DNA of 64,000 nucleotides from contig CM074821.1 of NCBI GenBank assembly GCA_037447605.1, positions 558,001 through 622,000 of the forward strand, in the 5' to 3' direction. The notes under the pieces are model-generated. The model was not told where the DNA came from, ran no database searches, and worked only from the letters and a program-made list of their open reading frames with translations. Position 1 is the first letter of the stretch, and every line of letters begins with the position of its first letter. Position numbers and translations under genes: made by a program. This document shows positions 10,539 through 54,289 of this stretch, one piece after another. Source of the DNA: Zygnema circumcarinatum SAG 698-1b (Eukaryota > Plantae > Zygnematophyceae).

Positions 10539-10913
10539 CTTTATGAAAAACATTTAAGATACGTCTGGTTGGATAGAAGCGAGGAATAAGCGTGATTTCT
10601 GAGCTGCACCATTTGGCCAATTCTTACTGAAGTTTACTCAGTCATCGTTTAATCGTTTAGGAAGTTGCTGACGATGGCTATGACTGCCTTCCTTCCTGTA
10701 GAAATTAAAGGCTACGATTTATGGCTATCAATGGCTACGTCTTTCAATTTAGTAACTAGTCCATGACTGCGATTTCCCTTTAGTAAGTGGGCGATGGTAG
10801 GGACCTTCCTCTTAGTATCAGTCGATGGCTACGCCCTCGACCTCACAAAGATCCCAGGGCTCCCATTTTGTGAACATGTGTGTTAGGGGACTGAACCAGA
10901 ACCAAAAGATCGT

Positions 10914-11202
10914 TTTTAGGGTTGCAAGGGTTTTGAGGGTTTTGGGGTCTTTAGGGTTTTCAAGCCTCTTAGGGTTTTCAAGGTTTTCAAGGTTTTGTGG
11001 GCTTTGAGGGTTTCGAGGGTTTTTAGTGTTCTGAGGGTTTTTAGGGTTTTGAGGGTTTTCAAGGTTTTAGGTTTTTTAAGGTTTTTAGTGTTTTTAGGAT
11101 TTCAAGGGTTTCTAGGGTTTTTAGTGTTTTAGGGTTTCTAGTGTTTCGATGTTTTTTTAGGGTTTCTGGGATTACTAGGGTTTCGAGGGTTTCGAGGGTT
11201 CA
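10914..11202 (+). repeat. Degenerate interstitial telomere-like array (TTTAGGG variants)
   Basis: Runs of tttaggg, tttcaagg and ttttgaggg. Confidence 0.8.
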
Positions 11203-16604: not shown

Positions 16605-19600
16605 ATGAAGACTCAGGATCGGCGGCGCAAGAATGATGTTTCCGGGAAGTTTCAGATCTCAGACAGCTTGAAGAATTTGCTGGAAGGAGGGCCTCGCTGG
16701 AAGAATGACATAGTTTCCCCCAAAGGAAGTGACTTTATCGATAAAGAATCACATATGGAGTCGGAAAAGCCGAAACCTCATCCAGCAATCTCGCCAATTG
16801 CGATGGGGGTTTCAGTTTCCTCTAAGAAGCTGTCAACTAGTGTGAGTCTGATTAAGATGGGAAAGGAGCTGGAAGCCGTGGCAATGCGCCAACAGAGCAT
16901 GAAGAGAGAGACAGAGTGGGGAGAGTGGAGAGAGAGAGGCGAGAGAGGGAGAGAGGAAGAGGCACAGAAGAAGCAACCGATGGAAGACGCTAAGAAATCA
17001 GGGTTAGGCAGATTAGGGTTCGGGAAATTAGGGTTAATGTTTGGGAGGTCCCACCCGGCAGTGGGAAGTGCAGAGAAGCAGTCAGTTATGGCGTCCAAGG
17101 AAGTGGTTAAGACGAGAGATAAGGGAGGTGTGAAGGAGAGGGAGGAAGTAGGGGGCAGCCAGAGGTGGTCCAGCCGGAAAGTAGCGGGAGGGGGGGAGAG
17201 TGGGAGATATATGGAGGAGTGGGAGAATCATGAGGATGAGTTGTCGAAGGAAGAGAGGGAAGCGTACAGGAGGGAGAGGCCTTTGATGAAAATGATGACA
17301 GATGTACCCCCGAGAGTGCGCTATGGGGAAGAGAAGGCGATGTTGAAGCGGCAAATATCTGAAAGGTCGTCGCTGGATCCGCCTCCTTTTCCCTTCCAAG
17401 AAAGAAGAGAAAAAGGAGAGGCGCTCCGACGGAATGGGGAGAGAGGGCGAGAGGAGGAGAGTGATAGTGTCCAGAGTGTGATTGTGAGTGACGAGATCGA
17501 GAGAGGGATTTATCCTTCGAACGCGCAGGTGGGAGAGGGGAGGGAGAGAGGAGGGAGAGGCGAGATGGGGGAAAGTGAGCGAGTAGCTGTAGAGCACAAC
17601 AGCCGCGTTATGAGTGGAATTAGGGCTGACGTCAGAAACTCTTCCGTGGCAGTTAGCCGGAAAGTAGCGGGAGGGGGGGAGAGAGGGAGATATATGGAGG
17701 AGTGGGAGAATCACGAGGATGAGTTGTGGGAGGAAGAGAGGGAAGCGTACAGGAGGGAAAGGCCTTTGATGAAAATGATGACAGATGTCCCCCCGAGAGT
17801 ACGCTATGGGGAAGAGAAGGCGACGTTGAAGCGGCAAATATCTGAAAGGTCGTCGCTGCGTCCGCCTCCTTTTCCCTTTCAAGAAGGGAGAGAAAAAGGA
17901 GTGGCGCTGAGACGGGAGGGAGAGAGAGGGCGAGAGGAGGAGAGGGATAGCGGCAGCCAGAGTGGGATTGAGAGTGACGAGAGAGAGAGAGAGCGAGAGA
18001 GAGGGTTTTATCCCTCGAACGCGCAGGTGGCAGAGGGGAGAGAGAGAGGAGGGAGAGGCGAGAGGGGGGAGAGGGAGCGAGTAGCTGTAGAGCACAACAA
18101 CCTTGTGGGAGGAATTAGGGCTGACGCCAGAAACGCTTCCGTGTTAGGGCTCGTGGCAGTTAAACCTGTTGCGGATCTGCAACGGGACGGGATTCCGTCC
18201 ACATATGGACCTGCTCGGGATGTGCGTCACGGAAGCGTGGAAATGAACGCGAACGGGGACAACAACTGGAACGGTAATTGGCCGCATAGAACTGCGCCAG
18301 AACGACGGACGGGTGACATGTATCCGTCGGAGCACGAGGACTGTCGACCATGGAACGGGGAAGATCCGTACCAATCAGAAGGCGACACATGGCGGCAGTT
18401 GAACGAGGAGGAACGCTCGTACATGGAGCGGCGGAGGTTCGAGGAGGCGGAAATTAGGGTTAGGGTTGGCGGAGGAGGAGGAGGGCGGGGGAGGTGCGAG
18501 GAGGGGAGAGAGAGGGTGGAGAGGGGAGAGAGAGAGCGCTTCCTGTGGCAGGCCAGGCATGAAGGTAGCTACAGGAGGGAGGGAGAGGGAGAGGGAGAGG
18601 GCGAGGGTTACGGGAGGGAGGGAGAGGGAGGGCCGTACAGGAGGGATGGAGGTGCGCGGTGGGATGGCGAAGGAAGATGGGAAGGGAGAGAGGGGGGACG
18701 GAGGTGGGAGGGAGGAGGGAGGGAGGGTACAGAGGACAGCGACTCTCAGCATTCGGATGTTTCAGCGTGGGGGAAGTGGAAGTGGAGATTCAGAAATCGA
18801 CAGACTGTGAGTCGGAGTCCGAGTCCGGAATATTTTTATCGCTCCGACAATTCTGTATGGGGGTCTGTGAAGTGCAGTGAAAGCGAAGATGAGGTTGCGG
18901 ACATTAGGGTTGCAGTAATCCCTGTTGACATTCCCATTGCTGTGCCCATAATGCCCCAGAATATGCAGGGAGTGGTAGTGTCTGCTTCCGGGGTGAGGTG
19001 GGAGGTGGGAGACGAAGGAGGGATGAGAGAGGGAGGGAAAGATTTGAAGGCAATGGCTGCAGTGGGAGAACGAGAGGCTTTCAAGGAGCGCATGGAGAAT
19101 AAAGAAGTGCGTGGGCTTCAGGACCGTCCCAAACTGCAGTCATTAGGTTTGGAGTCAGGGGGCGACTCTTTCTCGAACGACGAATCTGAGCGGAGACTTA
19201 ACTTTTTGTCGGAACCTTCCCCTTCTCCGCTTCTCTATTTGAAGAAAGATGGCGCTGGTGTCCATGAAGCTCCCACTTCTCCCATTTCGCCTCTGCAAAG
19301 GAGCAATTTAAGGAGCAGTTCGAGTAACTCGTACAAAGGGTCTGCATCGCCTTCGGAAGTGGCTTCTTCGAATCTTATTTTAGACGAGTCGGGGCCTCAT
19401 CTATCTGCAGGAGAAGCTCGTCCTACCTCTTCTTATGTGCGAGAGTGCAGCAGTCCTCAAGGCCAGGGCGTTTTTGGGGAGCAGTTAGGGCAAGTCGATA
19501 GGCACCCGCGGAACTTTTTGGAATTTGAAATTCCGGCAGAGACTATGAATGGAAACTACTCGGATTTCAGCAACAGCATGACGCCTTCTCCGGAGAGGAG

Positions 19601-21321
19601 AAATGCTTTTACTGCACACACTCCTTCAGAGATCAATTTGCCAGCGATGGATTCTGTTGAAGACACGTCAACTCTAGGGTCAGGCTTTGATAAAGTCAAT
19701 GCATCCGTAGCACGGAATAAGGAAACCTCGGTGTTGGAGGAGGAATTGTATCCGAATGTGATGTTAATAGAGGTGTCTCCTAAACCCCGTCGAGCTCCCT
19801 TTCTCTCCTTCAAACCTCCTGCTTCGCCATCTCCGGAAGGGGAAGCTAAACCTAAACAGCGGAAAGCAGCTTTTGTACCGACACCGGCTGCTGCTTTCCC
19901 CTCCGTAAAGCTGAGTACTTCTGATGCAATATGTGAATCTTCAGTGGAACGAGACAGCAAGGAGGATCAAGCGTCGACGATGGGAGTGAGTTTTCTGCTT
20001 TATTCTCTCTCTCTCTCTCTATGCACTTTCATGTTTTCCGGACTTTTTGCAGGCTTCCTATTCTGTCTTGTTCTAAAATGTGGAGAGATGAAGTGTGTCT
20101 GACTCGCCCTCACAACCTGCAGGGAAACGGAAGCAGTGAAATTCGCTCCAAGGCAAAGGCAGCAGCTCGAATGCGAGGACAATCTGCCCCCGAGTTTCTC
20201 AACTGGTATGATGCAAACGAAGATTCGGAAAGCCCTTCAGAAAGTGATGATGCGTCCACTCCAGGAATGAGGGCTCGTACGTTTGGAAGGGAGGGAAGAA
20301 AAAGTCGGAAGGAGAAACCTGGTCTTAGGAGGGGGAAAAGCAGAGATTTAGTAGCTGCTAAAGATGTGCCAATAGGGTGCTTGAGGGAGAACCACTGGGA
20401 GGTCAGAGAGCTTCCTACTTCAGCAAAACGCTTTCAGAAAAGCGATTGGCCTTCTGCTGCTGTTGTCTCCCATCCGACTTCAAAAGACTCTCTTGAGGGA
20501 AAGAGAGAGGTAGTGGAGAGGGCGGAGAGGTTGGTGCATTTTAGGAGAAATGCAGGAGAGGAGTTCAACTTAGTAGAGAATGTGAAGCTTCCGCGAACCT
20601 TCTCTGTGCCGGATGTAGTGAAGCCTCCAACTGTACGGCTTCCGCATAGATCGGCATCTGCAGGTCATCCTTCAGAGAGGCAGGTGCCTCTTAAGTTGAA
20701 AAGCGAAAACCGGCTGGTGGAGGTGAGTCATCTCCATATGCGAAAAGCAGCATTGTCTCCCACTATGATATCCTCTCCCTTCCTCCTCTCCTCTTAACTT
20801 GTAGCCCCTCCCTCCCTCCCTCCCTCCCATTCTTTCCTTTCCTTTGGACACTTTATTCCTAGCTGTCATTCTCTCCTTTGTCTCTCGTTAGCAATTGCCT
20901 GCCTCTCAAGCTTCAATCTTGTCTTTTCCTCGCCCTCAGTCCTATTCTTGTCGTTTTCCTTCTTTCCGTCACCTTTTCCTTTCTTCCATTCCTGGAATTC
21001 ACTCGCCTGATCGTACTGTTTACCTTTCCTACTCTCCTCCAGCTCAATGCCCCCACCCCTCCTCCCCTTTCCTCCTTACCTCCTCCCCTCCTCCCCTCTC
21101 CTTTAAAGCCTCCATTTCTTGCCTCTCTTTCTCGCTCTCTCTCTCTTTCTCTCTTTTGCCGCTTTGTCCTCCCACCCTCTCCCCTTGCTCCCTCTCTCTT
21201 CATCTCCTGTCAGAGACATCACCAGGGGGTTAGTCTTCACAAACCATTTGCTGACTCCACAGGACAGCCCAAAGTTTTTTTCCCAAATCCCCTTGAAGAG
21301 AATGGAAATCTCCCTACTTGA
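16605..21321 (+). CDS. Large uncharacterised, mostly disordered E/R/G/S-rich protein with an internal tandem duplication
   Basis: 3.4-kb open exon 16605-19985 (donor GTGAGT), exon 20123-20722 in phase, tentative last exon 21214-21321. No recognisable domain. Confidence 0.65.
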
Positions 21322-22077: not shown

Positions 22078-22395
22078 CCCTAACCCTAACTCTAATCCTG
22101 AACCCCAACCCTATCTCTAACCCTAACTCTTAACACTAACCCAACCCTCACCTAACCCTAATTCGAAACTCTTCCCCTGAAGCATTACCCTAACCTTAAC
22201 CCGAATCCTGAACCTCAACCCGAACCTCACCTGACCCCAAAACTTACCCTAATCCTAAACCCTAATCCTAACCCTAACCATAAACCCTAATCCTAATCCT
22301 GAACCTCAACCCTAACCCCTACCTGACCCCAACCCTTACCCTAATCCGAAACCTTAACCCGAACCCTAAAACCCTAACCCTAATCCTAATCCTAA
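22078..22395 (-). repeat. Interstitial telomere-like array, (CCCTAA)n variants on the + strand
   Basis: ccctaa, cctaat and cctgaa tandem units. Confidence 0.85.
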
Positions 22396-28497: not shown

Positions 28498-29976
28498 TAG
28501 GGTTTAGGCTTAGGGTTAGGGATTACATTCAAGGGTTAGGGTTCAGGGTGAAGGTTCAGGGTTTAAGGTTTAGGGTTAGGGATTAAAGTCTAGCGCAGGG
28601 TTCATGGTTAAGGTTTAGGGTTAGGGATTAAAGTCTAGCGCAGGGTTCATGGTTAAGGTTTAGGGTTAGGGATTAAAGTCTAGCGCAGGGTTCATGGTTA
28701 AGGTTTAGGGTTAGGGATTAAAGTCTAGCGCAGGGTTCATGGTTAAGGTTTAGGGTTAGGGATTAAAGTCTAGGGTTAGGGTTCAGGGTGAAGGTTCAGG
28801 GTTTAAGGTTTAGGGTTAGGGATTAAAGTCTAGCGCAGGGTTCATGGTTAAGGTTTAGGGTTAGGGATTAGGGATTTTAGGGCTTAGGGTTAGGGATTAA
28901 AGTCTAGGGTTAGGGTTTCAAGGTTAGGGTTTAGAGTTTAGGGCTTCGGGTTTAGGGTTTAGAGTTTAGGGCTTCGGGTTTAGGGTTTAGAGTTTAGGGT
29001 TTCGGGTTTAGGGTTTAGGGCTTAGGGTTAGGGATTAAAGTCTAGGGTTAAGGTTCAGGGTTTAAGGTTTAGGGTTTAGGGCTTAGGGTTAGGGATTAAA
29101 GTCTAGGGTTAGGGTTCAGGGTGAAGGTTCAGGGTTTAAGGTTTAGGGTTAGGGATTAAAGTCTAGCGCAGGGTTCATGGTTAAGGTTTAGGGTTTAGGG
29201 CTTAGGGTTAGGGATTAAAGTCTAGCGCAGGGTTCATGGTTAAGGTTTAGGGTTAGGGATTAAAGTCTAGGGTTAGGGTTCAGGGTGAAGGTTCAGGGTT
29301 TAAGGTTTAGGGTTAGGGATTAAAGTCTAGCGCAGGGTTCATGGTTAAGGTTTAGGGTTTAGGGCTTAGGGTTAGGGATTAAAGTCTAGGGTTAGGGTTC
29401 AGGGTGAAGGTTCAGGGTTTAAGGTTTAGGGTTAGGGATTAAAGTCTAGCGCAGGGTTCATGGTTAAGGTTTAGGGGTTAGGGCTTAGGGTTAGGGATTA
29501 AAGTCTAGGGTTACGGTTTCAAGGTTAGGGTTTAGAGTTTAGGGCTTCGGGTTTAGGGTTTAGGGCTTAGGGTGTGGGGGTTGGGGTTTGGGGTTTGGGG
29601 TTGGGTTGAAGGTTTAGGGTTCAGAGTTTACGGATTAAAGTCTAGGGTTAAGGTTCAGGGTTAGGGTTTAGAATTGAGAGCTTAGGGTTTAGGGATTACA
29701 TTCAAGGGTTAGGGTTCAAGTCAGGGTTTAGAGTTGAGGGCTTAGGGTTTCGGGATAATAGTCTAGGGTTAGGGTTCAGGGTGAAGGTTCAGGGTTTAAG
29801 GTTTAGGGTTAGGGATTAAAGTCTAGCGCAGGGTTCATGGTTAAGGTTTAGGGTTTAGGGCTTAGGGTTAGGGATTAAAGTCTAGGGTTAGGGTTTCAAG
29901 GTTAGGGTTTAGAGTTTAGGGCTTCGGGTTTAGGGTTTAGAGTTTAGGGCTTCGGGTTTAGGGTTTAAGGTTCAGA
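28498..29976 (+). repeat. 1.5-kb telomere-like satellite (TTAGGG/TTTAGGG) with 45-bp higher-order units
   Basis: Unit gggttagggattaaagtctagcgcagggttcatggttaaggttta repeats at 45-bp period (e.g. 28576, 28621, 28666), mixed with variant blocks. Confidence 0.92.
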
Positions 29977-30291: not shown

Positions 30292-30516
30292 CTAAAGGTT
30301 CCGCTCGTTCGGTTCGAACCACGGGAAGTCCAAAAACTCGAACACTTCGCGCTCCGTCTTGAGCGGCACGCTCTCATCCGACCGTGCGACCTGCATGCAT
30401 GCATGCATGCGTGCCAGGTGGCAGATCGGACGGCGGTTAGCGCCCGGCGGAGCCTTGCAGAGCATGCGGCGATGCATGTATGCGATTTGCTGGATTGAAT
30501 GGATGAGATGATGATG

Positions 30517-30548
<32 letters not shown>

Positions 30549-30562
30549 GATGATGGTGGTGG

Positions 30563-30608
<46 letters not shown>

Positions 30609-32812
30609 GATGATGGTGGTGGTGATGATGATGATGATGATTATGATGATGATGATGATGATGATGGTGATTATGATGATGATGATGATGATGATGATGG
30701 TGATTATGATGATGATGATGATGATGATGATGGTGATGGTGATTATGATGATGATGAGATTATGATGATGATGATGATGATGAGATGATGATGATGATTA
30801 TGATGATGATGAGATGATGATGATGATTATGATGATGATGAGATGATGATGATGATTATGATGATGATGAGATCATGATGAGATGATGATGATTAGATGA
30901 TGATGATTAGATGATGATGATTAGATGATGATGATGATGATGATGATGAGGGCATTTTCTATTACCGAGAAACAACAAGATGACTCCAAGCTTTACTAGT
31001 TATATATATACATAGGGAGATACTATTTACGCACCGTTTTTGTCTAGATACACACCTTTTTTCAACGGTCAGATTTTATTTTAGGGGTTTTTAGGGTTTT
31101 GGGGGGGTTTTTTATTTTTGGTTTTTTACCTTCTGCCCGTAGCGGTCCTTCACGACGGGGTACAGCCCGTGGTCGTCAAGTTTGTACCCCTTTTTATCCG
31201 CCACAATTCGCAATCTGAAAATAATTTCAACCGCGTCCCCCCTGCCACGTGTCAGGTGAAGCAGGCAAGCTCTGCCCTTTTTCCTTTCTCCTTCCAACGC
31301 GAAGAAACTGCCCCAAACCCAAAACCCCATTTTGAGCAAGAGCTCGCGGACTGAAAAAAAATGAAAATTTGGACCAAAAGCAACCTCCGGTTGAGCACGT
31401 CGTTGCCGGTCCACGCGATGAGGCCGAACGGAAATTGGTCCAAGGGGTACACCTGGTGAGCCAAAACCCCTTCAATTAAAAAAAAAAAAGAAAAACACAC
31501 ACACACACACACACACAGACACATAGAAGAAGTACAAGTCATACGTTTCTTTCCTGCCGAGGAGGGAGGGAGGGGGGGAGGGAGGGAGGGGAGGAAAGGG
31601 GCTAATTTCAATTCCTTTTATTAAATCTTTTTGTTCTAATGACCTACTAATTAAGCTCAGGATTCAAACTATATCCTGTTCGAGTTCTTGAATCATTTAG
31701 TTAGGGACAGTGAACAATAGTGATTTTTTTTTTTTTTTTCCCCACCTTGAAATCGATCCGGTGGCGCCGGTCCCTCCCCGGATAGCAGCACAGCCCAAAG
31801 TACGTATCCACTCCCTTGTCCGTTCCCTGCCAAACCCTAACTGCGAACGGAGTAAATTACAGCATAGAAACCGGGAAACCCTAACACATGGAGGACAGCT
31901 GCTTGGCTTGACCCAGACCCATGCCATGAAATCATGACGTCAGCGTGATGCTTGATGACGTGGCAGAAACCCAATCAACCAGGAACACAATTTTGGCAGC
32001 TTTTTTTTGCAGACGGAAAAATGCCCTGTTCTATGTGTCTGATGCGTTCAAGCAGCCTCCGTACATTTTTGTCCTTTTCCCCTATCAGTTTGTCTTTACC
32101 TCCACACTGTGGGTGGGTCCCACCAGAAGGTCCTCCTTGAGGAATCCTTTTTCCTTCAGTCTTTGAATGAGGAGAGGAAGCACTCCTGCATGGCTGCCAG
32201 ATGGCAATAAACGACAAAAAAAGGGTCAGACTAAAGGTCCAAATTACTCCATTTTTTGGGCCCAAAGAAGTACCTTGGGACTCTATTTCTTGATTAATTC
32301 ATTTAATTAATTAATTAATTAATTGATCTCTATGTAGAAACACCGACCTGCAAGACTATGGCAGCTGCTCTAGCTTAAAGGAGCAGGAAGGAGGAGCCAT
32401 TTTTTTTTTTTTTCACTAAGGATGAGTGCCAAACCGCGCTGCCAGGTCTCCTCCGCTTTAACTTAGTCAAATCAGGTCTCATTCGACTAACCAAAGTGAC
32501 CAAAAGTACTAAAAGTTCTAAAAGTACTAAAAGTACGCTTAGGTCGAGAAAACGGCGAGCCAAGCGCACTGCCCGACTGGGCCTCCCTCCCTCCCTCGTG
32601 CGGTTCGGATTTTGGGGTTTTAGGGTTTTTAGGGGTTTTGGGGTTTTTAGGGTTTATAGGGTGTTTAGGGTTTTGGGAGGGAGCGTGGCTCGGGAGGTTC
32701 GAACCTGCGACCGTCCGCGTGCGAGAGCAGAAGGTCCACGTCGCCGGACTGACCCCGCCCGCGCCGATACGACCCGCCGCAGACCACCCGCATCTGCACG
32801 CACGCAACCCAT

Positions 32813-38000: not shown

Positions 38001-38372
38001 TCAATCTCTCCGCCTCTCCCCCTTCCACCTCTCCCTTCCCCTCTCGTCTTCCCTCCGTCCTTCCCCCCTTCCCCCCTCCTTCCTCTCTCCATCTCATTCT
38101 CTCTCCCTCTCCTTAACTCATCATCTCCTTCCATCTCCCTTTCTCTCTCCCTCTCTCCCTCCCTCCTTCTCCCTCCTTCCTTCCCTCCCTCCCTCCCTCT
38201 CTCCTTCCCTCCCTCCCTCTCTCCCTCCCTCTCCTCCCTCCCTCCTCTCTCTCCCTCCCCTCCCNNNNNNNNNNCCCCCCCCCCCCCCCCTCACCTCCAC
38301 CCGGCCAGCCTGCACGCCCCCCTCCACGAGCATCAGCCGCAACGCCTGGAAAAGGCCTCCCTTACCCGCCAT
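30292..38372 (-). CDS. POLL: DNA polymerase lambda (X family; BRCT, 8-kDa lyase and catalytic domains)
   Basis: Exons 38372-38295, 37382-37245, 36599-35910, 35767-35686, 35474-35344, 34961-34899, 34248-34069, 33476-33423, 32793-32705, 32193-32100, 31826-31746, 31452-31385, 31214-31130 and 30390-30292. Motifs RRSFSYYKA, IWGIGP, GGSYRRG..SGDVDLL, RIDFK, AWTGN and EPNERNL*. Confidence 0.95.
30499..30949. repeat. (GAT)n trinucleotide microsatellite, about 450 bp, in the last POLL intron
   Basis: Direct reading; produces the poly-Met ORF. Confidence 0.95.
37125..37218. repeat. AACCAACAGCC/AACCAAC minisatellite in POLL intron
   Basis: Tandem aaccaacagccaaccaac units. Confidence 0.8.
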
Positions 38373-42015: not shown

Positions 42016-42176
42016 CTAAGGAGGGCGGCGCAAGCCGAGGAAGAGTGCGATTGCAATGAGAAGGCTGAGAGAGAGCCTCCCTCCAGGGAGAAGCACGGGG
42101 GCCTGCTTCAGCACCTTCTTCATTTTCCTGCAGATCCGTCCCAGGAATGGAAAAAAATAAAATAAATAAGGGGGGG

Positions 42177-42209
<33 letters not shown>

Positions 42210-43929
42210 GGGGGGGGGGGCAGAGAGAGAGAGCGAGAGAGCGGGGGAGATGAGCTTCAAAAAAGGAATTGGCGCTCAGTCGGCAGAGGAGGAAGGAGCA
42301 GCACCTGAAGGGACTCCCATATCGAAGCACCCACGCCATCAATGGGGGTAGAACTCCAAACAAAAAGCAGTTCGCATATAGTCCTGCAAACTCTAAGGAA
42401 GATGAAAATATGGCGGGACACGACATTGCCAGAATTAAAGGTGGAAGAATGGCGGCTGTATATATCCATATCTTCTTAGCTGCTCTTCCGTCTCTCTCGT
42501 CCGCACTCGCTACATTCGACAGAAGGACAGAATCTTCATAGGAATCGCCGCTTTTCGCATCAGAAAATTTGAGGGTATGCTTCCACATGTCAATTGTGTC
42601 AGATAACTGTTTCGGAAAGCTTAGCGCGTATCCAATCAAAGTTGTTCCTAGGGCGGAGAATGCAAAAGCGCGCACACAGGGAGCTGCCGATGTGCCTAAA
42701 GATAGGAGCAGTTTGATTGGGTCAGCTGACTTGGAAGCAGAAGTAGATAAAGTAGGAGCTATTCCGAGGATCACTGTGTTCCATGCAAGCACCATAGCCA
42801 GAGGGATAGCCCCTCCAAGCAATACAGCTTTCCGAGACCGCCGAACATTGCCCTTTAAAAGGCTGCATATGAGAGGAGTCACTACATGAAACCCTAATGT
42901 TAGCACCGTAATTGGGACAGCCGGGAGCATTGCCGTAGATGTCCATACTGACTTTCTAAGAGCCTCCCCGAATGCGATATGCGGCAAACCAAAGGCCAAA
43001 AGAAGCATGGAAGATGTAAGCATTAGCACACAAAGTCCTCGGTTGACGGAGTCGATCAAAGTGAAAGGGCCTCTAATAGCAGCGAATGAAATGGCGGCTG
43101 TGCAGGCCAACGATGCGACAGGTGGCGCAACGAAAGAGCTCGTTGCTGCAGATATTATGTCGCCGAGCCCGGCAATGCAGGCCACTAGTAAAGCGTAGTT
43201 CAGAGCTCCATACACAGAAGCTGCTACCAGGGCCATCCTTAACCCTAATGTCTCTGCAGCAAGCCCGGTAAAGCTCACTTCCTGCCATCCATTCGCAGCC
43301 ATGGCGGCATGACCGACTTCCACAACAAGCAGAATGGAAGCCATGACGTACGACCAGCTGCCCACGATGATGAGAGTGGAGGGCAGTAGCCCTGCTGGGA
43401 GGGTGACAGCTGGCAGCCCGAGAATGCCCGGCCCGACCGCTGTCCCCACTACGAGACTGACACATGTCAAGATGCTTCTCTCCTCACCCGCTCCCTCTCC
43501 CTCTCCCTCTCCCTCTCCCTCTCCCTCTCCCTCTCCCTCTCCCTCTCCCTCTCCCACTCTTTCGCCTGCTTCTCCCCTTTCTCCTTCAGAGAAGCTACCT
43601 TCCAGAGCGCTTCTCTCAGGCGCTGCATTCCGCCAGTCGGAAGAAATGTCTGCATTTTGAGCGCGTACTCTGTTCCCCCTCTTTGAAACGTCTTGCCTTC
43701 TCCTCCAAGTGCTGGCGATCAACCGCCACGTGGAGCCATCAGGGCTTTCGCAGCTGAGCTTTCTAATGGACGATCGACACCTGGCAGAGTCCTGGGAGAC
43801 AATGCTCACGTGTCTCCCTCTGATTGGGTGAAAGGCTCGGGAGAAGGAGGAGAAAGCTATGTCTGTGTGACACGTGGCAGAGAGGGACAGGTGGCCTTGT
43901 AAGCCGCGTAGTTTAGAGGAGCCGGACAT
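42016..43929 (-). CDS. Tryptophan/tyrosine permease family (TyrP/Mtr-like) transporter, probably plastid-targeted
   Basis: Exons 43929-42305 and 42127-42016. Ser/Arg-rich N-terminus, VVGTAVGPGILGLP, LTLGFHVVTP and about 11 hydrophobic segments. Confidence 0.88.
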
Positions 43930-44828
43930 GGAGACGAGGCGAAGAAGCAGGAGTTGAATTTCTATTCCAAAAAATATGTCAACTTTTGTTCATATCTGTT
44001 CCAAAAAAAGGTGAGCCTTTCCTCTCTCTGCCACATTTTTAGGGTTTCTGAAATCCAAGATGGCTGCTTCAGGTCGGGGAGTTTTCTTGGCGTCTGTGAA
44101 ACATCACCTCTGCATTAGGGCATATCCGACTCCCAATTTTCGAGCGGAAATTTTTCCTTTAGTACTAGTGACGATTATTAAGTCTTGCATTCCCTCTTCT
44201 AAGGGACGTCGCGAAGCTCTTGGAAGCCATGGCGCCTAAAGTTAGGGTTAGGGTTTGAGGAGCTGCAGGACCGTGCTATGCTGCTATTCCTATGAAGAGG
44301 TTCCATGCACACTGATCTCAGTTTGAGATTCTGTGATAGCGTTGACTTTGAACTGGCAGCCGTTACAGTTCAGAGCGTTGATTGATTGTAACAGGACGGG
44401 AAGAGCATGGAGACATATCGGGATACTACAATATATTTCGGACGGCCACCCGGAAAAACCCTCTGGCCTACTTAGGGTGGGGTTCCATCAGCCCGTTATT
44501 CCGACGTGGCGTCGTAATGGACGACGACCCATGGGTTCCATGAGGCCGTTTCCGCCTACGTGGCGCCGACGTGGCGCCACGTGGTAACGAGGCACCGTTC
44601 CACAGGATGCTGCTCCGGAGGTGGTGTAACGCCATTACGACCATTCGCGTGCCGCCACGTGGCTACCGAAGATCCGCCAGCGTGCGACTGCCACGCTGGC
44701 CAACGGCGTTCTGATGGAACTCGTCGTTCCATCTGAAAACGGCATCCTACGTGGACCGTAACAAGCTCGTTACGAAACGGGCTGATGGAAACCCACCCTT
44801 AGGGTGGGTTTCCATCAGNNNNNNNNNN

Positions 44829-46112
44829 CCCTCTCCCTCTCCCTCTCCCACTCTTTCGCCTGCTTCTCCCCTTTCTCCTTCAGAGAAGCTACCTTCCAGA
44901 GCGCTTCTCTCAGGCGCTGCATTCCGCCAGTCGGAAGAAATGTCTGCATTTTGAGCGCGTACTCTGTTCCCCCTCTTTGAAACGTCTTGCCTTCTCCTCC
45001 AAGTGCTGGCGATCAACCGCCACGTGGAGCCATCAGGGCTTTCGCAGCTGAGCTTTCTAATGGACGATCGACACCTGGCAGAGTCCTGGGAGACAATGCT
45101 CACGTGTCTCCCTCTGATTGGGTGAAAGGCTCGGGAGAAGGAGGAGAAAGCTATGTCTGTGTGACACGTGGCAGAGAGGGACAGGTGGCCTTGTAAGCCG
45201 CGTAGTTTAGAGGAGCCGGACATGGAGACGAGGCGAAGAAGCAGGAGTTGAATTTCTATTCCAAAAAATATGTCAACTTTTGTTCATATCTGTTCCAAAA
45301 AAAGGTGAGCCTTTCCTCTCTCTGCCACATTTTTAGGGTTTCTGAAATCCAAGATGGCTGCTTCAGGTCGGGGAGTTTTCTTGGCGTCTGTGAAACATCA
45401 CCTCTGCATTAGGGCATATCCGACTCCCAATTTTCGAGCGGAAATTTTTCCTTTAGTACTAGTGACGATTATTAAGTCTTGCATTCCCTCTTCTAAGGGA
45501 CGTCGCGAAGCTCTTGGAAGCCATGGCGCCTAAAGTTAGGGTTAGGGTTTGAGGAGCTGCAGGACCGTGCTATGCTGCTATTCCTATGAAGAGGTTCCAT
45601 GCACACTGATCTCAGTTTGAGATTCTGTGATAGCGTTGACTTTGAACTGGCAGCCGTTACAGTTCAGAGCGTTGATTGATTGTAACAGGACGGGAAGAGC
45701 ATGGAGACATATCGGGATACTACAATATATTTCGGACGGCCACCCGGAAAAACCCTCTGGCCTACTTAGGGTGGGGTTCCATCAGCCCGTTATTCCGACG
45801 TGGCGTCGTAATGGACGACGACCCATGGGTTCCATGAGGCCGTTTCCGCCTACGTGGCGCCGACGTGGCGCCACGTGGTAACGAGGCACCGTTCCACAGG
45901 ATGCTGCTCCGGAGGTGGTGTAACGCCATTACGACCATTCGCGTGCCGCCACGTGGCTACCGAAGATCCGCCAGCGTGCGACTGCCACGCTGGCCAACGG
46001 CGTTCTGATGGAACTCGTCGTTCCATCTGAAAACGGCATCCTACGTGGACCGTAACAAGCTCGTTACGAAACGGGCTGATGGAAACCCACCCTTAGGGTG
46101 GGTTTCCATCAG
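44829..46112. other. Apparently identical copy of 43535-44818 immediately after a 10-N gap (probable contig-overlap artefact)
   Basis: Offset 1294 bp. Copy 2 starts in a (CCCTCT)n tract and copy 1 ends in the MITE array, both typical contig break points. Confidence 0.75.
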
Positions 46113-47864
46113 CCCGTTATTCCGACGTGGCGTCGTAATGGAGGACGACCCATGGGTTCCATGAGGCCGTTTCCGCCAACGTGGCGCCGACGTGGCTGCC
46201 ACGTGGTAACGAGGCACCGTTCCACAGGATGCTGCTCCGGAGGTGGTGTAACGCCATTACGACCATTCGCGTGCCGCCACGTGGCTACCGAAGATCCGCC
46301 AGCGTGCGACTGCCACGCTGGCCAACGGCGTTCTGATGGAACTCGTCGTTCCATCTGAAAACGGCATCCTACGTGGACCGTAACAAGCTCGTTACGAAAC
46401 GGGCTGATGGAAACCCACCCTTAGGGTGGGTTTCCATCAGCCCGTTATTCCGACGTGGCGTCGTAATGGAGGACGACCCATGGGTTCCATGAGGCCGTTT
46501 CCGCCAACGTGGCGCCGACGTGGCTGCCACGTGGTAACGAGGCACCGTTCCACAGGATGCTGCTCCGGAGGTGGTGTAACGCCATTACGACCATTCGCGT
46601 GCCGCCACGTGGCTACCAAAGATCCGCAAGCGTGCGACTGCCACGCTGGCCAACGGCGTTCTGATGGAACTCGTCGTTCCATCTGAAAACGGCATCCTAC
46701 GTGGACCGTAACGAGCTCGTTACGAAACGGGCTGATGGAAACCCACCCTTAGGGTGGGTTTCCATCAGCCCGTTATTCCGACGTGGCGTCGTAATGGAGG
46801 ACGACCCATGGGTTCCATGAGGCCGTTTCCGCCAACGTGGCGCCGACGTGGCTGCCACGTGGTAACTAGGCACCGTTCCACAGGATGCTGCTCCGGAGGT
46901 GGTGTAACGCCATTACGACCATTCGCGTGCCGCCACGTGGCTACCGAAGATCCGCCAGCGTGCGACTGCCACGCTGGCCAACGGCGTTCTGATGGAACTC
47001 GTCGTTCCATCTGAAAACGGCATCCTACGTGGACCGTAACAAGCTCGTTACGAAACGGGCTGATGGAAACCCACCCTTAGGGTGGGTTTCCATCAGCCCG
47101 TTATTCCGACGTGGCGTCGTAATGGAGGACGACCCATGGGTTCCATGAGGCCGTTTCCGCCAACGTGGCGCCGACGTGGCTGCCACGTGGTAACTAGGCA
47201 CCGTTCCACAGGATGCTGCTCCGGAGGTGGTGTAACGCCATTACGACCATTCGCGTGCCGCCACGTGGCTACCAAAGATCCGCAAGCGTGCGACTGCCAC
47301 GCTGGCCAACGGCGTTCTGATGGAACTCGTCGTTCCATCTGAAAACGGCGTCCTACGTGGACCGTAACGAGCTCGTTACGAAACGGGCTGATGGAAACCC
47401 ACCCTTAGGGTCAGTTTCCATCAGCCCGTTATTCCGACGTGGCGTCGTAATGGACGACGACCCATGGGTTCCATCAGGCCGTTTCCACCAACGTGGCGCC
47501 GACGTGGCTGCCACGTGGTAACGAGGCACCGTTCCCCAGGACGGTCCGAAGAAGGGGGTGTAACGCCATTACGACCATTCGCGTGCCGCCACGTGGCTAC
47601 CAAAGATACGCCAGCGTGCGACTGCCACGTTGGCTGGAAGCCTCTTGCAAACCCTAAAAAACTGTCGGCAGCGACGCGCGTACGGTAACCGCAGTGGGCC
47701 ACGGCGGACGCTGCAAATCGTGCACGTGGCGATCGCTGATTGGAAAACGACGTTTTGATGGAACTCGTCTTTCTATCTGCAAAACGGCGTCCTACGTGGA
47801 CCGTAATGAGCTCGTTACGAAACGGGCTGATGGAGAATGGCCCTTAGGGTGGGTGTCCATCAGC
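45769..47864. mobile_element. Tandem array of PIF/Harbinger (Tourist-like) MITE units separated by TTA
   Basis: Units 45769-46092, 46096-46420, 46424-46748, 46752-47076, 47080-47404 and 47408-47843 (longer variant), plus the start of another at 47847. 23-bp TIRs GGGTGGGTTTCCATCAGCCCGTT; every junction is exactly TTA. Confidence 0.8.
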
Positions 47865-48227
47865 GTTTTTTCGCCGACGTGGAGGTACAGGCGTAGTTTT
47901 GGAGGATGATGTGGCGCCGTCGTGGCGCCGACTAGGACCGACGTGGAGGTACAGGCGTAGTTCCCTAGAACGACGGTATGTTGGAACGTGGCAAAAAAAA
48001 AAAAAAAGTTTGATGGGTTCGATGGGCCAATGGGATGCCTTAATGGGAGTATCGTACGAACCCTACTATTCACCTACTGTACTGTACCTCCAGATCGCCC
48101 ACAATCGTACGGTAAAACCTACAGTACAGTAAGAATGTACGGACGAAGTTTCATGTAGAACGTCGCAAGCGTCCAAGTTCTTTGTTGGTCGCATTGGGTC
48201 TCCGCTGGTCGTTGTCGGTTCAGCTAG

Positions 48228-49341: not shown

Positions 49342-52300
49342 ATGATGAAGCATCCGCAGGAGTTTCACATTGGCGTGGCGGTGCGTGACGACGCGGCGAG
49401 CGAGCAGGCACTGGAGTGGGCGCTGGCGGAGTTCGGCATTCCCGAGGCGCTGCCGCATCTGCTCTTCACGCTCATCCATGTCGTCTCGGATGTTCCCAAC
49501 GAAAGTGCGGTCTTTCTCTCTGTCTCCCTCTCGCTATGTCTCTCCCCCTCCCTCTCTCTCCCTCCTGCCCTCTCTCTCTGTCACTCGCGCTCGCTTTCTC
49601 GCCCTCGTTTTGTCGACCTCCGTCTATCTCTCCTCTCTCTCCTCTCTCTTCCTTTCTATCGTTCGCAACCACTTTCTCTCCCTTCCTTTATCACTCCCTC
49701 TCTTCGTCTTCTCCCTCCCCCTCTGGCTTCCCCTCTCTTTCTCGCTTTCCCCCCTTCCTCGCTCTCCTTTCTTTCCTCCTCTGTCCCTCTTCCTGCGATT
49801 TACGCTCACTCTTACTCTCTCTTTCTCCCTCCGTCTATCTCCTCTCTTCCATGAAACATAGGGGATGGAGTGCGGAAAAGTGAAAAGTAAGAGGCAAGCT
49901 TTGTGACTGTGAAGAGGGGGCCTGCCCTGCTTTCTACACTTTGCCTAATGTTGAAAAAGGAGGATCCTTCCCTGAAAGCGGTCTTACATTGTATACATAG
50001 TGTTGAGTAGGGTTTCTCGGAGCCAAAGCGGCTTTTGGTGTTGGCTGGCTGCGTGACATTTCATTTAACAAGCGACAGTATCAAACAAAAAAAGAAAAAA
50101 GTGGCCAGTTGATTCATTCCTTTTACTCAGACTTTGGAATTAGGGGATGCAGGTGGGAAGCTTATTCGTGTCAGTGAAGCGGAGCCTTCTGCAGTGGCGG
50201 AACATCTGAGTGAAAATGTTTTGCCCTTTTTGATGAGGCTGCAAGACTTCTGTGATGAGACAGAGGTGAGAGAAATCTGTCCTTTCTCTGCATAATCTAA
50301 GGATGATTGGAAGAATGAAGGAGCTGCTTTCCTAACATTTATGCCTTTAGAATGCCATGTCCCTACATATCTGAGAAATAAATGGCAGAGGGGCTTCTCA
50401 AGCTTGTGTCGATGCAAAAAAGATTTTATGCTGGCTGATGGTTTCTGTACACGTGACGTTGCTCGCAGGTGACATCATCCATAGAAGTCGTAAAGAATGA
50501 CTTGAGGCCAGAGGCAATTATGGATGCTGCAGCGCGTCTCAGTGTGGGAGTGCTCGTATTGGGAGGCTCTCCTAACACGACCACGTATGCATTTTGTCGT
50601 TGTTTTGCCTTTCCTCCACTCTCCGTTTTGTTGCTCCGTGCAAACATTGGAGATCCTGACGGTAGCCATCCCTAGAGATTTTACTTTGTAAGGCCTTTTT
50701 TTGCTTTGGAATTGTTGCAGGTGGGGAACTATCGCGTACTGCACAGCTACGGGGAAGCAGCCTCCTGGGTGCATTGCCATTTCCATAGTGAATGGTAGAA
50801 AGCATAAGGAGGTGTCAGGAACGGGAGAGCTTGTATCAAGTCAGAGCTTCTCTCCCTCCTCTGTCCTCGGAGTTATTGAGAGTGAAGCAGAGGGAGGAGG
50901 GAGCTCCCAGTCATCCTTTGGGAGCACCCCAAATGGTAGTGCCCAGATGGGAACGACAGGAATGCTTATGGGACCCAGTTCTTTGGCTCCAAGCACAGTC
51001 TCCAGGAGAGAGAGATGGCAGAACCGCAATATTGGGAGAGAGGAAGATGCACTCTATTATGGGGGAGCTCTGCATGTAGATGTCGATGTAGCTGCCATGG
51101 ATGGTAGCGTGGAGGGAGAGAATTCATCTCCTAATCTCCCCCGCGCTCACTCACCATCGGGTCATCCTTCTACATTGTCTCCCTCACGTCAATTGGGTCC
51201 TGGTTCTGAACTGTCGAGAGTATCACCTCGACGCCTTCCTCCTCCACTGCCCACAATCATAAGTTCTCCCAGCAGAACTCCTCCAGAATCGCCTCAAATG
51301 TCTTCTATGGCAGCAGAGGTTCATCCACTAAATGAAGAGAAATCAAAATTGGATGAAGAAGTGAGTGGTGCGAAAACGGACGAGCCGCAAGAGAATGGGG
51401 AAAGGGAGAGCGATCCAACTGTAGGGATTGAAGGGGAAAGGGTTGAGAAAGTTGGAGCTGTGAAGGAAGCAGAGGAGGTAGAGAGGGGTGAGTCTGTTGA
51501 AGTTGACGAAAGACGCACTGAAGCTGCGGATTCTGTGATCGAGCTTGCAGCGAGTTTTGCCGATGATCAATTGAGAGAAGATAATCCTCAGGACGCTAAA
51601 GAAGTTCAGGAGTCTTCCACAACTTCAGGAGCCCCAGATGCAGTATCATTGGAAAGTACGCAGCTTGCGGCAACTGATACTTCTACGGCAGTTGAAGAGA
51701 CTGTTGGAGAGATACAGAAGAAAGAAGGAGAGGCTGTGGGAACAATAGCTGTGGATGAATCTGCAGAGCCACAGGTGGAGGACTCGACCACTGCAGATGA
51801 GGGTGAGTGTGGGTTAGCCGAGGAGGCAACACAAGGTTTGGAAGGTGGAGTTTTAGAAGATGAGAAACTGAAAATGAAGGTCGTGGACATAGAAGAGGTT
51901 TCTACAAATACCGAATCATTGGGGCAAGGAGAAGCGGGTGAAGAAAGAGAACATGCTGAGTCCTCCACTTCTCAAGAAGCGAGCAGCGCAGATGTCGCAG
52001 TGAGGGATGAGGAAGCGTCTGTTAGCAATCAGGGGATGGAGAAAGGTGCAGAAGGTGAAGTTTCTGAGATTGTCGTGCCAGAAGGGGTGCCAGGCCCTTC
52101 AGCTGACAATAGTCTCTCGCTATCATCCCCTGAAGTGACACAAGCTGTTACAAGTGAAGGTGGTGAAGATGTTTTCTTTGATTCTGTTGTTTCTCAGGGT
52201 GAGGGAGAACCTGAACAATTAGATAGGAAATTGTCAGGAGTAAACATCATTGATCTCTCTTCAGGAGATGAGATGCCTCCAGTGGGGGAGGATGGTCTGA

Positions 52301-54289
52301 CTCCTCTCCAGCGCGCTCGTTTGGCGTATAGAGCAGGAAATCCACACTCTGGTCCTTCTGCTTCTTCCCAGTCATATTCAGGAGAGGGCTCAGGGGACCA
52401 AGGAGGAGGGGGGAAGGTGGAGTTTGCTCTCCCTCCTCCTAGCATCACTCGTGCAGCAAAAATGTCCGGAAAGCTCGCAGCAAAGGCCAACCTACCGACA
52501 TCTATGGGAGGAAGAGTAAGTTAAGAATTAGTAATCATACTCTGCTGGGAAGAGGGCCGAAAGGAGGGTGGGAAGGGTGGGGAGGGGGGGGTTGGGAAGG
52601 GAGAGAGAGGGGGAAGCGCGCGCGCGCGAGAGAGAGAGAGAGAGCGACGTCATGCTTGCTTACCTGCAATGTCTCAGTGGCTGAAGTAGGTGTGTGTGGT
52701 TTCTTGCAGGGTAAGATGGACCGGAAGGCTAAGGAAGAAGCTGAGGTAGCAGTTGGGAGAGCCATCAGAGAGAGCATGGGGCAGTCGAACGTGCCCCTTA
52801 TGGTTCCGCGGGTGAAAACCGACTTTAAAGTTTACACAATGAAAGAGCTGCAGGCAGCCATGGATCACTTTTATCCCAATCATATTCTGGGGGAAGGAAG
52901 CTATGGAATTGTGTATCGTGGAATGCTGGATGGAGTGGACGTCGCCATTAAACAGTTGAAAAATCCAGAGCATAATGCCGCAATGGAGGAGATTGAGAGG
53001 GAACTGGAAGTGCAGAAGAGATGTGAACATCCTAATCTAGTGAGATTGTTGGGATATTCTGTGGAAGATCGAAGCTTAGTTTATGAGTATTTGTGTAATG
53101 GCTCGCTAGAAGATCGACTGCTTTGTATGGGAGGCTCACCTCCACTCCTCTGGCCAGATCGATGCCGAATAGCTATGGAGGTAAGCTCGATTTCCGCTTG
53201 TTATGAGACAAGCTCCCTTCTCTTTTTCTCAAAGTAGTAAATTTGTGAAGTAGTTGTTTGAGACCCTTTTCTTTCTCGCAATGCACTGGTAGAGAGTGAA
53301 GCTGTCGCGTGAGAAAGATATTGTGGTGTTAACTATTGCATGTCCGTTTGCAGGTAGCTGCGGCTCTCCATCACTTACACACTCGCACTCCTCCCATAGT
53401 TCATCGAGATGTGAAACCTGCAAACGTATTACTGGATGAACACTTTGTTGCAAAACTGGGGGACGTGGGGCTCGCTCGGCTCATGGCTGACATGCAGAAC
53501 GGAAACACTCACATAGTCAGGAAATCAGTCATAGTTGGAACAGAGCATTATGTTGATCCTGAGTACCTCTGTGCAAGGAGGGGCTATTTGGGCCCCAAAT
53601 CCGATGTTTACTCGTTTGGAATAGTGCTCCTCCAATTGTTAGTAGGGGGCATTCCGAACCTCAGGAAAATAGACATTGCTGTGGAGCAGGACAATCTTAA
53701 CAGTCTGCTCGATCCCAGAGCTGGAGATTGGCCCAAAGGCCTTGTTATGGATATGGCAAATTTGGGTCTTTGGTGCTCCGAAATGGACCGAAAGGATCGG
53801 CCAGACTTAGAGGAAGAAGTGATTCCTGCATTGCTTGAAATATGCGAGGGAGCTGCGGCAGAGGTGATGGAGCAGGAACGCAGGAAAGATAGAGCTGTGG
53901 AGGAAGCGAGAGTGAGGGAAGAAGCTCTTGCTCTCGCACGGGAGGAAGCTGTTAAGCTGAAAGAGGCTGAAATGAAAAGGCTGAGTGATGAGAGAGTCGC
54001 TCAAGCAGCAGCAGCTGCTGCAGCAGCAGCTGAGAGAGAAGCGATTCTCAACCGTGCTTCTGTAAAAAGCCTTCCCGGTAGCCCTGCAAATAGACCGGCA
54101 CTTTCTTCTCCTCCTAAGCCTGCAGATTCGCAGAAGGCAGCTGTGCATGTGAAAAGTAACTCTGTTTCTTCTCCTGCTCATGCAAAAGCAGCAGTTCTGC
54201 AGGGTCCTATTCCGGTAGCTTCTGCAAGAGCCCCTCCTCCCCCTCCAGCCATGGAGGCTTCTGGAGGCTGCGCGTGCGTTATATTGTGA
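49342..54289 (+). CDS. USP-domain receptor-like cytoplasmic kinase (RLCK-IX type) with long acidic linker and C-terminal CaaX
   Basis: Exons 49342-49504, 50153-50265, 50469-50584, 50721-52515, 52710-53180 and 53354-54289. USP motifs (IGVAV..S..ALEWAL, TLIHV, VLVLG); kinase GEGSYG, VAIK, HRDVKPAN, GDVGLAR, GTEHYVDPEY; ends GGCACVIL*. Confidence 0.9.

Follow-up and report, generated by a model that had tools for sequence, protein, structure and literature searches.

The sequence examined is a 64-kb window of Zygnema circumcarinatum SAG 698-1b, taken from one assembly of this streptophyte alga. A transporter gene of the Trp/Tyr-permease family, streptophyte type, occupies positions 42016–43929 on the minus strand, and the intergenic region upstream of this amino-acid permease gene holds a stack of repeat units, U1 to U7, joined end to end on the plus strand. 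The locus is interrupted by a 10-N scaffold gap at 44819–44828, which the preliminary description had overlooked. Positions 43535–44818 and 44829–46112 (both plus strand) are identical at 1284/1284 positions, an exact redundancy that brackets the gap, and repeat families D1–D9 recur across it with a spacing of 1294. The left-hand copy includes a second print of U1 (44475–44798) and runs 17 nt into U2; what appeared to be a solo copy with TTA flanks at 44475–44798 was rejected, since it is U1 assembled twice around the gap. Discounting the redundancy, 546 bp separate the first ATG of the permease open reading frame from the start of the array upstream of it. Because the contig on the left breaks off within the array, the copy number should be taken as a minimum or as uncertain; short-read assembly of the repeat could have distorted it, and even the order of units.

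TRF returned one array at 45765–47634 with a period of 328, 5.7 copies and 97% matches, in keeping with the 328-bp repeat first described. Allowing up to 3 mismatches, the 23-mer GGGTGGGTTTCCATCAGCCCGTT occurs 13 times with alternating strands, where shuffled sequences lead one to expect 0; the family ends can be written as GGGTGGGTTTCC. Perfect 23-nt TIRs bound the four 325-nt units U2 (46096–46420), U3 (46424–46748), U4 (46752–47076) and U5 (47080–47404). The initial reading of all regular units as 325 bp with 23-bp TIRs holds for these four, but not for the left edge unit U1 (45769–46092), which is 324 nt long and whose 5′ end carries one mismatch relative to its own 3′ end (GGGTGGGG). To the right of U5 lie the 436-nt variant U6 (47408–47843) and, after another TTA, U7 (47847–47990), a truncated 5′ part of a distant relative that contains an internal 64-bp direct duplication. 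Both had been reported, the second as a diverged start at 47847.

A TTA stands on either side of every unit from U1 to U6, including the left edge (45766–45768, plus strand), so the earlier observation that a single TTA joins the units and precedes the first was accurate. The sequence CCC-TTA-GGG is found at each of the six junctions, where the TIRs are complete. The 49-bp palindromes described between near-identical units were found as four identical TIR-TTA-TIR copies at 46070–46118, 46398–46446, 46726–46774 and 47054–47102, and degenerate versions span 47382–47430 and 47821–47864. The TTA itself extends the palindrome, so the arms may equally well be read as 24 nt long around a single central T. 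The stack opens exactly where TTA meets GGG, and the flank to the left has no homology to the unit; such a start would have roughly a 1% chance if the 328-bp repeat had arbitrary phase. At the other end the stack finishes in the truncated U7, so that no pair of TTAs in unique DNA can be seen to flank it. The word satellite, which had been applied to this locus, overstates approximately 6 units at one site. Classical satellites form arrays of at least hundreds of units, occupy many loci, or both, whereas the window has a single locus with 5.7 regular copies, better called a short tandem TE array.

By their sequence features, the units look like Tourist-type (PIF/Harbinger) MITEs. Elements of this kind typically have TIRs of about 14–25 nt with a GG(G) start, a 3-bp target-site duplication that is usually TTA/TAA, many dispersed copies, and an autonomous partner that shares their TIRs and encodes a DDE transposase and a Myb-like ORF1. 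The units are MITE-sized at 324–436 nt and non-coding: no open reading frame in the region is longer than 93 aa, and the period, 328, is not divisible by 3. Their TIRs start GGG-TGG-GTTT (pattern GGG-NNN-GTTT). The junction site, CCC-TTA-GGG, matches only in part the 9-bp PIF target consensus C-W-C-TTA-G-W-G that Zhang and colleagues reportedly described in 2001. PIF-type ends of ZmPIFa, PePIF1 and OsPIF2 start GGGNNNGTTT, and the unit TIRs, which share this start, together with the TTA spacer fit the PIF/Harbinger-type ends tabulated in PMC6327408, as the preliminary description had proposed. The stack is probably composed of non-autonomous cut-and-paste transposons of Tourist type, with a PIF/Harbinger transposase as the mover. 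The single-strand fold of the unit is strong (z = −9.5), and the TIR core TTCCA..CCGTT recurs in several internal copies on both strands. Rfam miRNA-hairpin matches on the junction palindromes were set aside as look-alikes, scoring 24–30 bits against gathering scores of 60–90.

No transposase was recognized among 9 open reading frames tested, the four longest of the window included. Queried with U2, U6 and U7 at word size 7, blastn gave no match in the 64-kb window beyond the locus, and a scan of the window for any TWA-GG...CC-TWA element with matching ends recovered the array alone. Metagenome contigs scanned with the TIR pattern and with an internal 31-mer yielded 0 hits each.

The core units carry a pattern of shared variants that bears on how they multiplied. 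With U1–U5 diverging by 0.3–2.5%, the array is young; it is also still CpG-rich. U2 and U4 differ at 1 site and U3 and U5 at 2, whereas neighbouring units differ at 3–4. U3 and U5 have 195A, 205A and 401G in common, U4 and U5 share 116T, and U5 and U6 share 382G. At alignment columns 116 and 195 all four combinations are present. A derived G at column 48 is common to U2–U5, while U1, which also has 3 private changes and a 1-nt deletion, keeps C, as does U6. Units two apart are closer to each other than neighbours are, and this, with the four-combination mosaic, shows duplication and exchange within the array to be the route by which U1–U5 were amplified.

A different picture emerges at the right end, where U5, U6 and U7 are unlike in body, in length and in TIR tips. 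U6 is 29–31 sites away from the core units, has an extra block of approximately 110 nt, and carries a replaced patch at unit positions 134–150. Its own two ends disagree at 3 of their first 12 positions. The same GG-to-CA change at positions 5–6 is found in both tips; the estimated probability of this coincidence is ~0.004. The first 17 nt of U7 match the canonical TIR at 16/17 positions while its body is ~57% identical, an identity that exceeds shuffles in 499–500 of 500 trials. At a uniform identity of 65%, one or fewer mismatches in 17 would be expected with P ~0.007; this TIR-versus-body argument, like the TIR-covariation argument for U6, depends on few positions. No 3′ TIR partner for U7 was found across the window. 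Divergence along the stack is asymmetric, from 1–2.5% in U1 to ~9% plus indels in U6 and ~43% in U7. Since the left edge unit is so little diverged, an old, symmetric array in decay at both edges does not fit, and separate insertions next to the end of a resident element would account for the three unlike right-end members better than decay in place.

Taking both patterns into account, we consider it fairly probable that members of one TIR family were stacked by insertion and that the 325-nt form was then amplified in place. In a first step, the relative represented by U7, the 436-nt U6 and the 325-nt form would have become adjacent, each later element entering the TTA that flanked the end of a resident element. 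There, TTA and the resident GGG/CCC tip would form the palindromic CCC-TTA-GGG, which resembles the extended target preferred by PIF-type elements. Because each insertion duplicates the TTA, exactly one TTA would be left between neighbours. The second step is visible in the variant pattern: a 328-bp repeat, made of the 325-nt form and one TTA, multiplied in place to at least 5 units through unequal exchange, which included duplication of a two-unit block and was followed by exchange among units. The preliminary description had suggested independent insertions followed by amplification. Its first half agrees with the three unlike relatives at the right end, but does not extend to U1–U5, which arose by duplication and exchange within the array.

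A history with a single MITE insertion is unlikely. All other units, U6 and U7 too, would then derive from in-place duplication of the unit plus its TTA, through slippage between the 3-bp flanks or unequal exchange between them, and U6 and U7 would be old monomers at the edge that were not homogenised and decayed. The core units did clearly amplify in place, tandem arrays are commonly most diverged at their edge monomers, and U6 has 195A, 401G and 382G in common with U3/U5, as a related array member would; MITE arrays in corals have also been ascribed to slippage and not to transposition (PMC2872659). What a single insertion accommodates poorly is the strong asymmetry of divergence between the two edges, the non-uniform decay of U7, in which the TIR was kept as the body changed, and the appearance of the same change at both tips of U6.

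Other origins fare worse. Rolling-circle copying of a circle made of the element and one TTA, excised or recombined, followed by reinsertion as a concatemer, has been proposed for Bari1 arrays (PMC5932611) and would produce uniform head-to-tail units. We regard it as improbable here: on its left the array is bounded not by a random cut but by a clean, complete TIR with its TTA, no TIR bases are missing at the junctions, and U6 and U7, which differ from the other units, would be left unexplained. Similarly improbable is the proposal that each unit represents its own insertion into a re-created TTA, with little or no amplification in place. Every junction does have intact TIRs and exactly one TTA, and the reference list of PMC6327408 points to reports of a strong target-site preference for PIF elements. 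However, independent draws would not be expected to give the similarity of units two apart and the four-combination mosaic, both of which unequal exchange predicts, and the derived state in U2–U5 is absent from U1 and U6. An ordinary palindrome-containing tandem repeat without a transposon origin would suit the lack of dispersed copies in the 64-kb window and of metagenome-contig hits to the TIR pattern or internal 31-mer, but is very improbable given the phase of the array, which falls on the palindrome centre at the left boundary, the PIF-like ends and spacer, and the presence of the same ends on variants with different bodies.

Stacking by insertion followed by amplification has a close precedent in Drosophila melanogaster. 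Junctions bearing a target-site duplication are the signature of double insertion in tandems of the P element, hobo and R1, and hobo expanded to about 16 copies (McGurk & Barbash 2018, PMC5932611). Those tandems resemble the Zygnema stack in their head-to-tail order, intact ends and spacer of one target-site length, in growth by unequal exchange, and in a location near the 5′ region of a gene. They differ in that the Zygnema stack has a PIF/Harbinger-type spacer, the 3-bp TTA, is built of 325-nt MITEs instead of autonomous elements, holds three unlike family members, and has an insertion history read from one assembly. By analogy, the locus would be a single clean example of the route known from Drosophila, in which double insertion is followed by unequal exchange.

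Tandem arrangements of MITEs and related elements have been described elsewhere. The piggyBac-type CMITEs of corals (Wang et al. 2010, PMC2872659) also form tandem arrays of whole MITEs, units and spacers alike being highly similar, and their amplification was ascribed to in-place duplication; they belong to another superfamily (TTAA versus TTA), and mixed stacks of diverged relatives were not reported. Plant MITE multimers, including a Tourist dimer in sorghum, and self-insertion were documented by Jiang & Wessler (2001), as summarised in PMC5172404. According to that summary, Tourist and Stowaway MITEs often land in or beside other MITEs and some families favour self-insertion; the cases it covers are mostly nested or two-element ones, with no 328-bp periodic array. 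The non-nested SaTar MULE arrays of guayule and rice (PMC5907723) are likewise uninterrupted, end-to-end arrays of different elements. They are formed by unrelated, microsatellite-targeted MULEs with atypical flanks, whereas the Zygnema elements are relatives with one TIR in common, and the 3-bp site that joins them is typical of the superfamily. Finally, a MITE has given rise to a tandem repeat in the MITE-part satellites Xstir, miDNA4, pearl/HindIII and DTC84 (PMC12628747, PMC9659126). In those satellites an internal segment was amplified, in contrast to the Zygnema repeat unit, which is the whole element plus its flanking TTA.

Conversion of a dispersed transposon into a tandem repeat has been documented mostly in Drosophila and a few animals. 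The present locus offers a compact instance in a streptophyte alga, with both proposed steps still legible, unlike relatives being stacked at one 3-bp site and the youngest then multiplied in place. Being one locus in a short-read assembly that is broken, it is neat as an example but not surprising. If many such stacks exist genome-wide, that would argue that the target preference of PIF/Harbinger-type elements by itself generates satellite seeds. A bolder idea, to which we give little credence, is that the family homes to its own ends, the resident CCC tip with its TTA mimicking the palindromic target favoured by its transposase. Copies arriving later, those of other TIR-sharing subfamilies among them, would then prefer the ends of old ones, producing non-nested end-to-end stacks genome-wide and repeatedly seeding tandem arrays, and promoters would gain dense clusters of ACGTGG/G-box motifs. 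To call the stack a site-specific, growing record of element activity, as was done initially, is speculation.

The array also brings approximately 37 ACGTGG motifs, 12 of them perfect G-boxes, to a position upstream of the transporter gene. On motif content, these may have a regulatory side effect on the permease.

Tandem Repeats Finder places a single array at 45765-47634 of the window (period 328, 5.7 copies, 97% matches). The 23-mer GGGTGGGTTTCCATCAGCCCGTT occurs 13 times at ≤3 mismatches, on alternating strands, and was absent from 100 shuffles. Cutting at the ends of this sequence delimits U1 (45769-46092, 324 nt), U2 (46096-46420, 325 nt), U3 (46424-46748, 325 nt), U4 (46752-47076, 325 nt), U5 (47080-47404, 325 nt) and the variant U6 (47408-47843, 436 nt). 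TTA flanks both sides of each unit from U1 to U6, with the copy preceding U1 at 45766-45768, and after another TTA a seventh piece, U7, begins at 47847. U7 contains an exact 25-nt direct repeat (47874-47898 and 47938-47962, 64 bp spacing), representing an internal duplication, and terminates at a run of 15 A near 47996. Abutting ends create 49-nt palindromes at 4 junctions and degenerate versions at 2 more; because TTA lengthens the palindrome by one base per side, each junction also reads, no less validly, as two 24-nt arms with one T between them. The repeat array, the 13 matches to the terminal inverted repeat (TIR) and the TTA at every unit bear out the TTA-joined units with inverted ends of the preliminary description, which had also reported the 49-bp junction palindromes, the 436-nt variant and the TTA-joined start at 47847. 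Its overall observation stands, with an important assembly caveat.

That caveat concerns one of four 10-N scaffold gaps in the window, at 44819-44828, which the preliminary description had missed. The 1284 bases on either side (43535-44818 and 44829-46112) are identical base for base, and this redundancy reflects two overlapping contigs left unmerged, the overlap ending within the array: the left contig stops 17 nt into U2, and the right contig starts upstream and crosses the array. An extra unit at 44475-44798, considered as a solo insertion, was rejected, since the 1284-base identity makes it U1 printed twice; annotations in either copy are likewise counted twice. Given the assembler's trouble at the array, the number of units, numbered here U1 to U7, is a minimum or uncertain figure. 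The further gaps lie at 15682, 38265 and 56893. The first two are inside or adjoin CT-rich microsatellites (15630-15767 and 38135-38264), so repeat lengths beside them are unreliable, and no repeat is listed at 56893.

In an alignment of U1-U5, nine columns are variable. Units two apart resemble each other more closely (1 difference for U2/U4, 2 for U3/U5) than neighbours do (3 or 4), a pattern characteristic of the duplication of a two-unit block. All four pairings of the G/T at column 116 with the G/A at column 195 exist among U2-U5, which requires exchange or conversion between units. At column 48 a G is common to U2-U5 and a C is present in U1 and U6, so that the ancestor of U2-U5 is younger than their split from U1. 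U1-U5 thus grew by duplication and exchange inside the array, not by separate insertions from a dispersed family. Of the earlier proposal that insertions were followed by amplification, in-place amplification of the like units holds on the variant pattern and multiple insertion is plausible for U6 and U7; separate insertions do not hold for U1-U5.

Several features speak for a transposon nature of the unit. Its ends are perfect 23-nt inverted repeats, it is MITE-sized and non-coding (longest ORF 93 aa, period not a multiple of three), and its single-strand fold reaches -101 kcal/mol (z = -9.5 vs shuffles). The TIR core TTCCA...CCGTT is repeated several times within the unit on both strands, and subterminal binding sites of transposons often recur inside the element in this manner. 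The array starts exactly at TTA/GGG, next to a left flank without homology to the unit; if the phase of the 328-bp repeat were arbitrary, such a start would have a chance of about one in a hundred. The unit start, GGG-TGG-GTTT, fits the GGGNNNGTTT pattern of PIF-type ends (ZmPIFa, PePIF1, OsPIF2), and the PIF/Tourist flank is usually TTA (PMC6327408). The Tourist/Harbinger assignment made in the preliminary description is therefore likely on TIRs, TTA, size and boundary, and falls short of proof: the 64-kb window holds no copies of the unit outside the array, no empty site was seen, none of the nine ORFs tested (the four longest of the window included) is a transposase, and metagenome scans for the unit gave no matches. 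At the left edge of the stack TTA is seen in unique DNA; the right end is truncated, and so the flanking pair is not demonstrable. Compared with Rfam, the junction palindromes (46065-46124 and others) gave sub-threshold miRNA-precursor matches of 24-30 bits against gathering cut-offs of 60-90, and membership in those families was rejected in favor of hairpin look-alikes. If transcribed, the junction hairpins could feed small-RNA pathways.

U6 differs from the core units (U2-U5) at 29-31 sites; it has ~110 nt of additional sequence in one block, and a patch spanning unit positions 134-150 has been replaced. Both of its tips read CA at positions 5-6, where canonical ends have GG (GGGTCAG... and GGGCCAT...). 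We estimate a probability of ~0.004 for this pair of changes to arise at both of two mirrored sites 436 nt apart, and in-place decay would not yield them. Hairpin-templated repair would make each tip match the tip of its neighbour instead. U7 matches the TIR at 16 of its initial 17 bases (even at a uniform 65% identity, ≤1 mismatch in 17 has P ~0.007), and the body is ~57% identical to U2 or U6, a weak but real match that scored above shuffled sequence in 499 and 500 of 500 trials. Such a pairing of conserved ends with a diverged body is typical of distinct MITE families that use a common transposase. At the left edge, U1 has diverged by just 1-2.5%, which does not fit an old array decaying from its two sides. 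We favor three separate arrivals, those of U7, U6 and the 325-nt form, each of which would have entered a TTA beside a resident end; this reading is inferred from few positions at a single locus. A single insertion followed by in-place duplication alone, in which U6 and U7 would be edge units that decayed, is unlikely, as asymmetric divergence and the TIR patterns speak against it. A rolling-circle concatemer would leave the clean left end and the unlike neighbours unexplained and is improbable, and we give very little credence to every unit being a separate insertion, which the distribution of variants in the core units contradicts. Least credible is a plain palindromic satellite, which accounts for neither the boundary phase nor the shared ends on different bodies.

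With successive arrivals, each insertion into a flanking TTA would duplicate those 3 bp and leave a single TTA between neighbours. Zhang et al. in 2001 reportedly described the PIF target as the palindrome C-W-C-TTA-G-W-G. An element end plus its TTA gives CCC-TTA or TTA-GGG, which agrees with that target at its outermost C and G, and abutting two ends creates a symmetric site. This likeness makes repeated use of the same TTA by later insertions plausible, not proven. An extended 9-bp target preference has been reported for PIF-type elements (PMC6327408). A motif of target-site-duplication length in the junction is McGurk and Barbash's signature for double insertion of P elements, and hobo expanded to ~16 tandem copies (PMC5932611). 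Self-end targeting, if it were a genome-wide property of the family, would raise the significance of the locus.

We file the Zygnema array as another case alongside known tandem arrays of MITEs and other transposable elements. Corals have whole-MITE tandem arrays of piggyBac type, ascribed to slippage (PMC2872659); in plants, MITE multimers, a Tourist dimer and family-specific self-insertion are known (PMC5172404), and guayule and rice carry uninterrupted end-to-end arrays of unrelated MULEs (PMC5907723). MITE-derived satellites mostly amplify an internal segment, not the whole element (PMC12628747, PMC9659126). A shallow literature search found no report of an array of whole Harbinger-type units.

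Counting the redundant stretch once, the array begins 546 bp upstream of the initial ATG of an ORF of the Trp/Tyr-permease family (42016-43929, minus strand; Pfam E = 4e-62), whose nearest protein clusters are streptophyte. ACGTGG is present in 37 copies in the array (45769-47990), or 17.8 per kb vs 0.29 per kb elsewhere, with six per unit, all on the same strand; two per unit are perfect CCACGTGG G-boxes. The CCGACGTGG motif is kept in U7 despite its diverged body, suggesting that it may have a role in the element, such as that of a putative protein-binding site. Alternatively, these motifs may form a putative cis-regulatory cluster upstream of the permease. CpG observed/expected is 1.24-1.39 in the array vs 0.68 for the window.

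A short GTTAGGGTTAGGGTTT lies in the left flank of the array, at ~45545. Large interstitial telomere-like arrays are found at 28498-29972, 22078-22395, 10912-11200 and 32610-32674, comprising TAGGGTT x221 (with 20-, 27- and 59-nt higher-order periods), CCCTAA x52, and the 9-mers GTTTTTAGG and TTTAGGGTT. The ORF at 50701-52524 (plus strand, 607 aa) has no Pfam match, and for that at 16605-20102 (plus strand, 1165 aa) the best is a sub-threshold SPATA48 (16.9 bits vs a cut-off of 27). At 30502-30949 the trinucleotide GAT is repeated ~153 times (86% purity).
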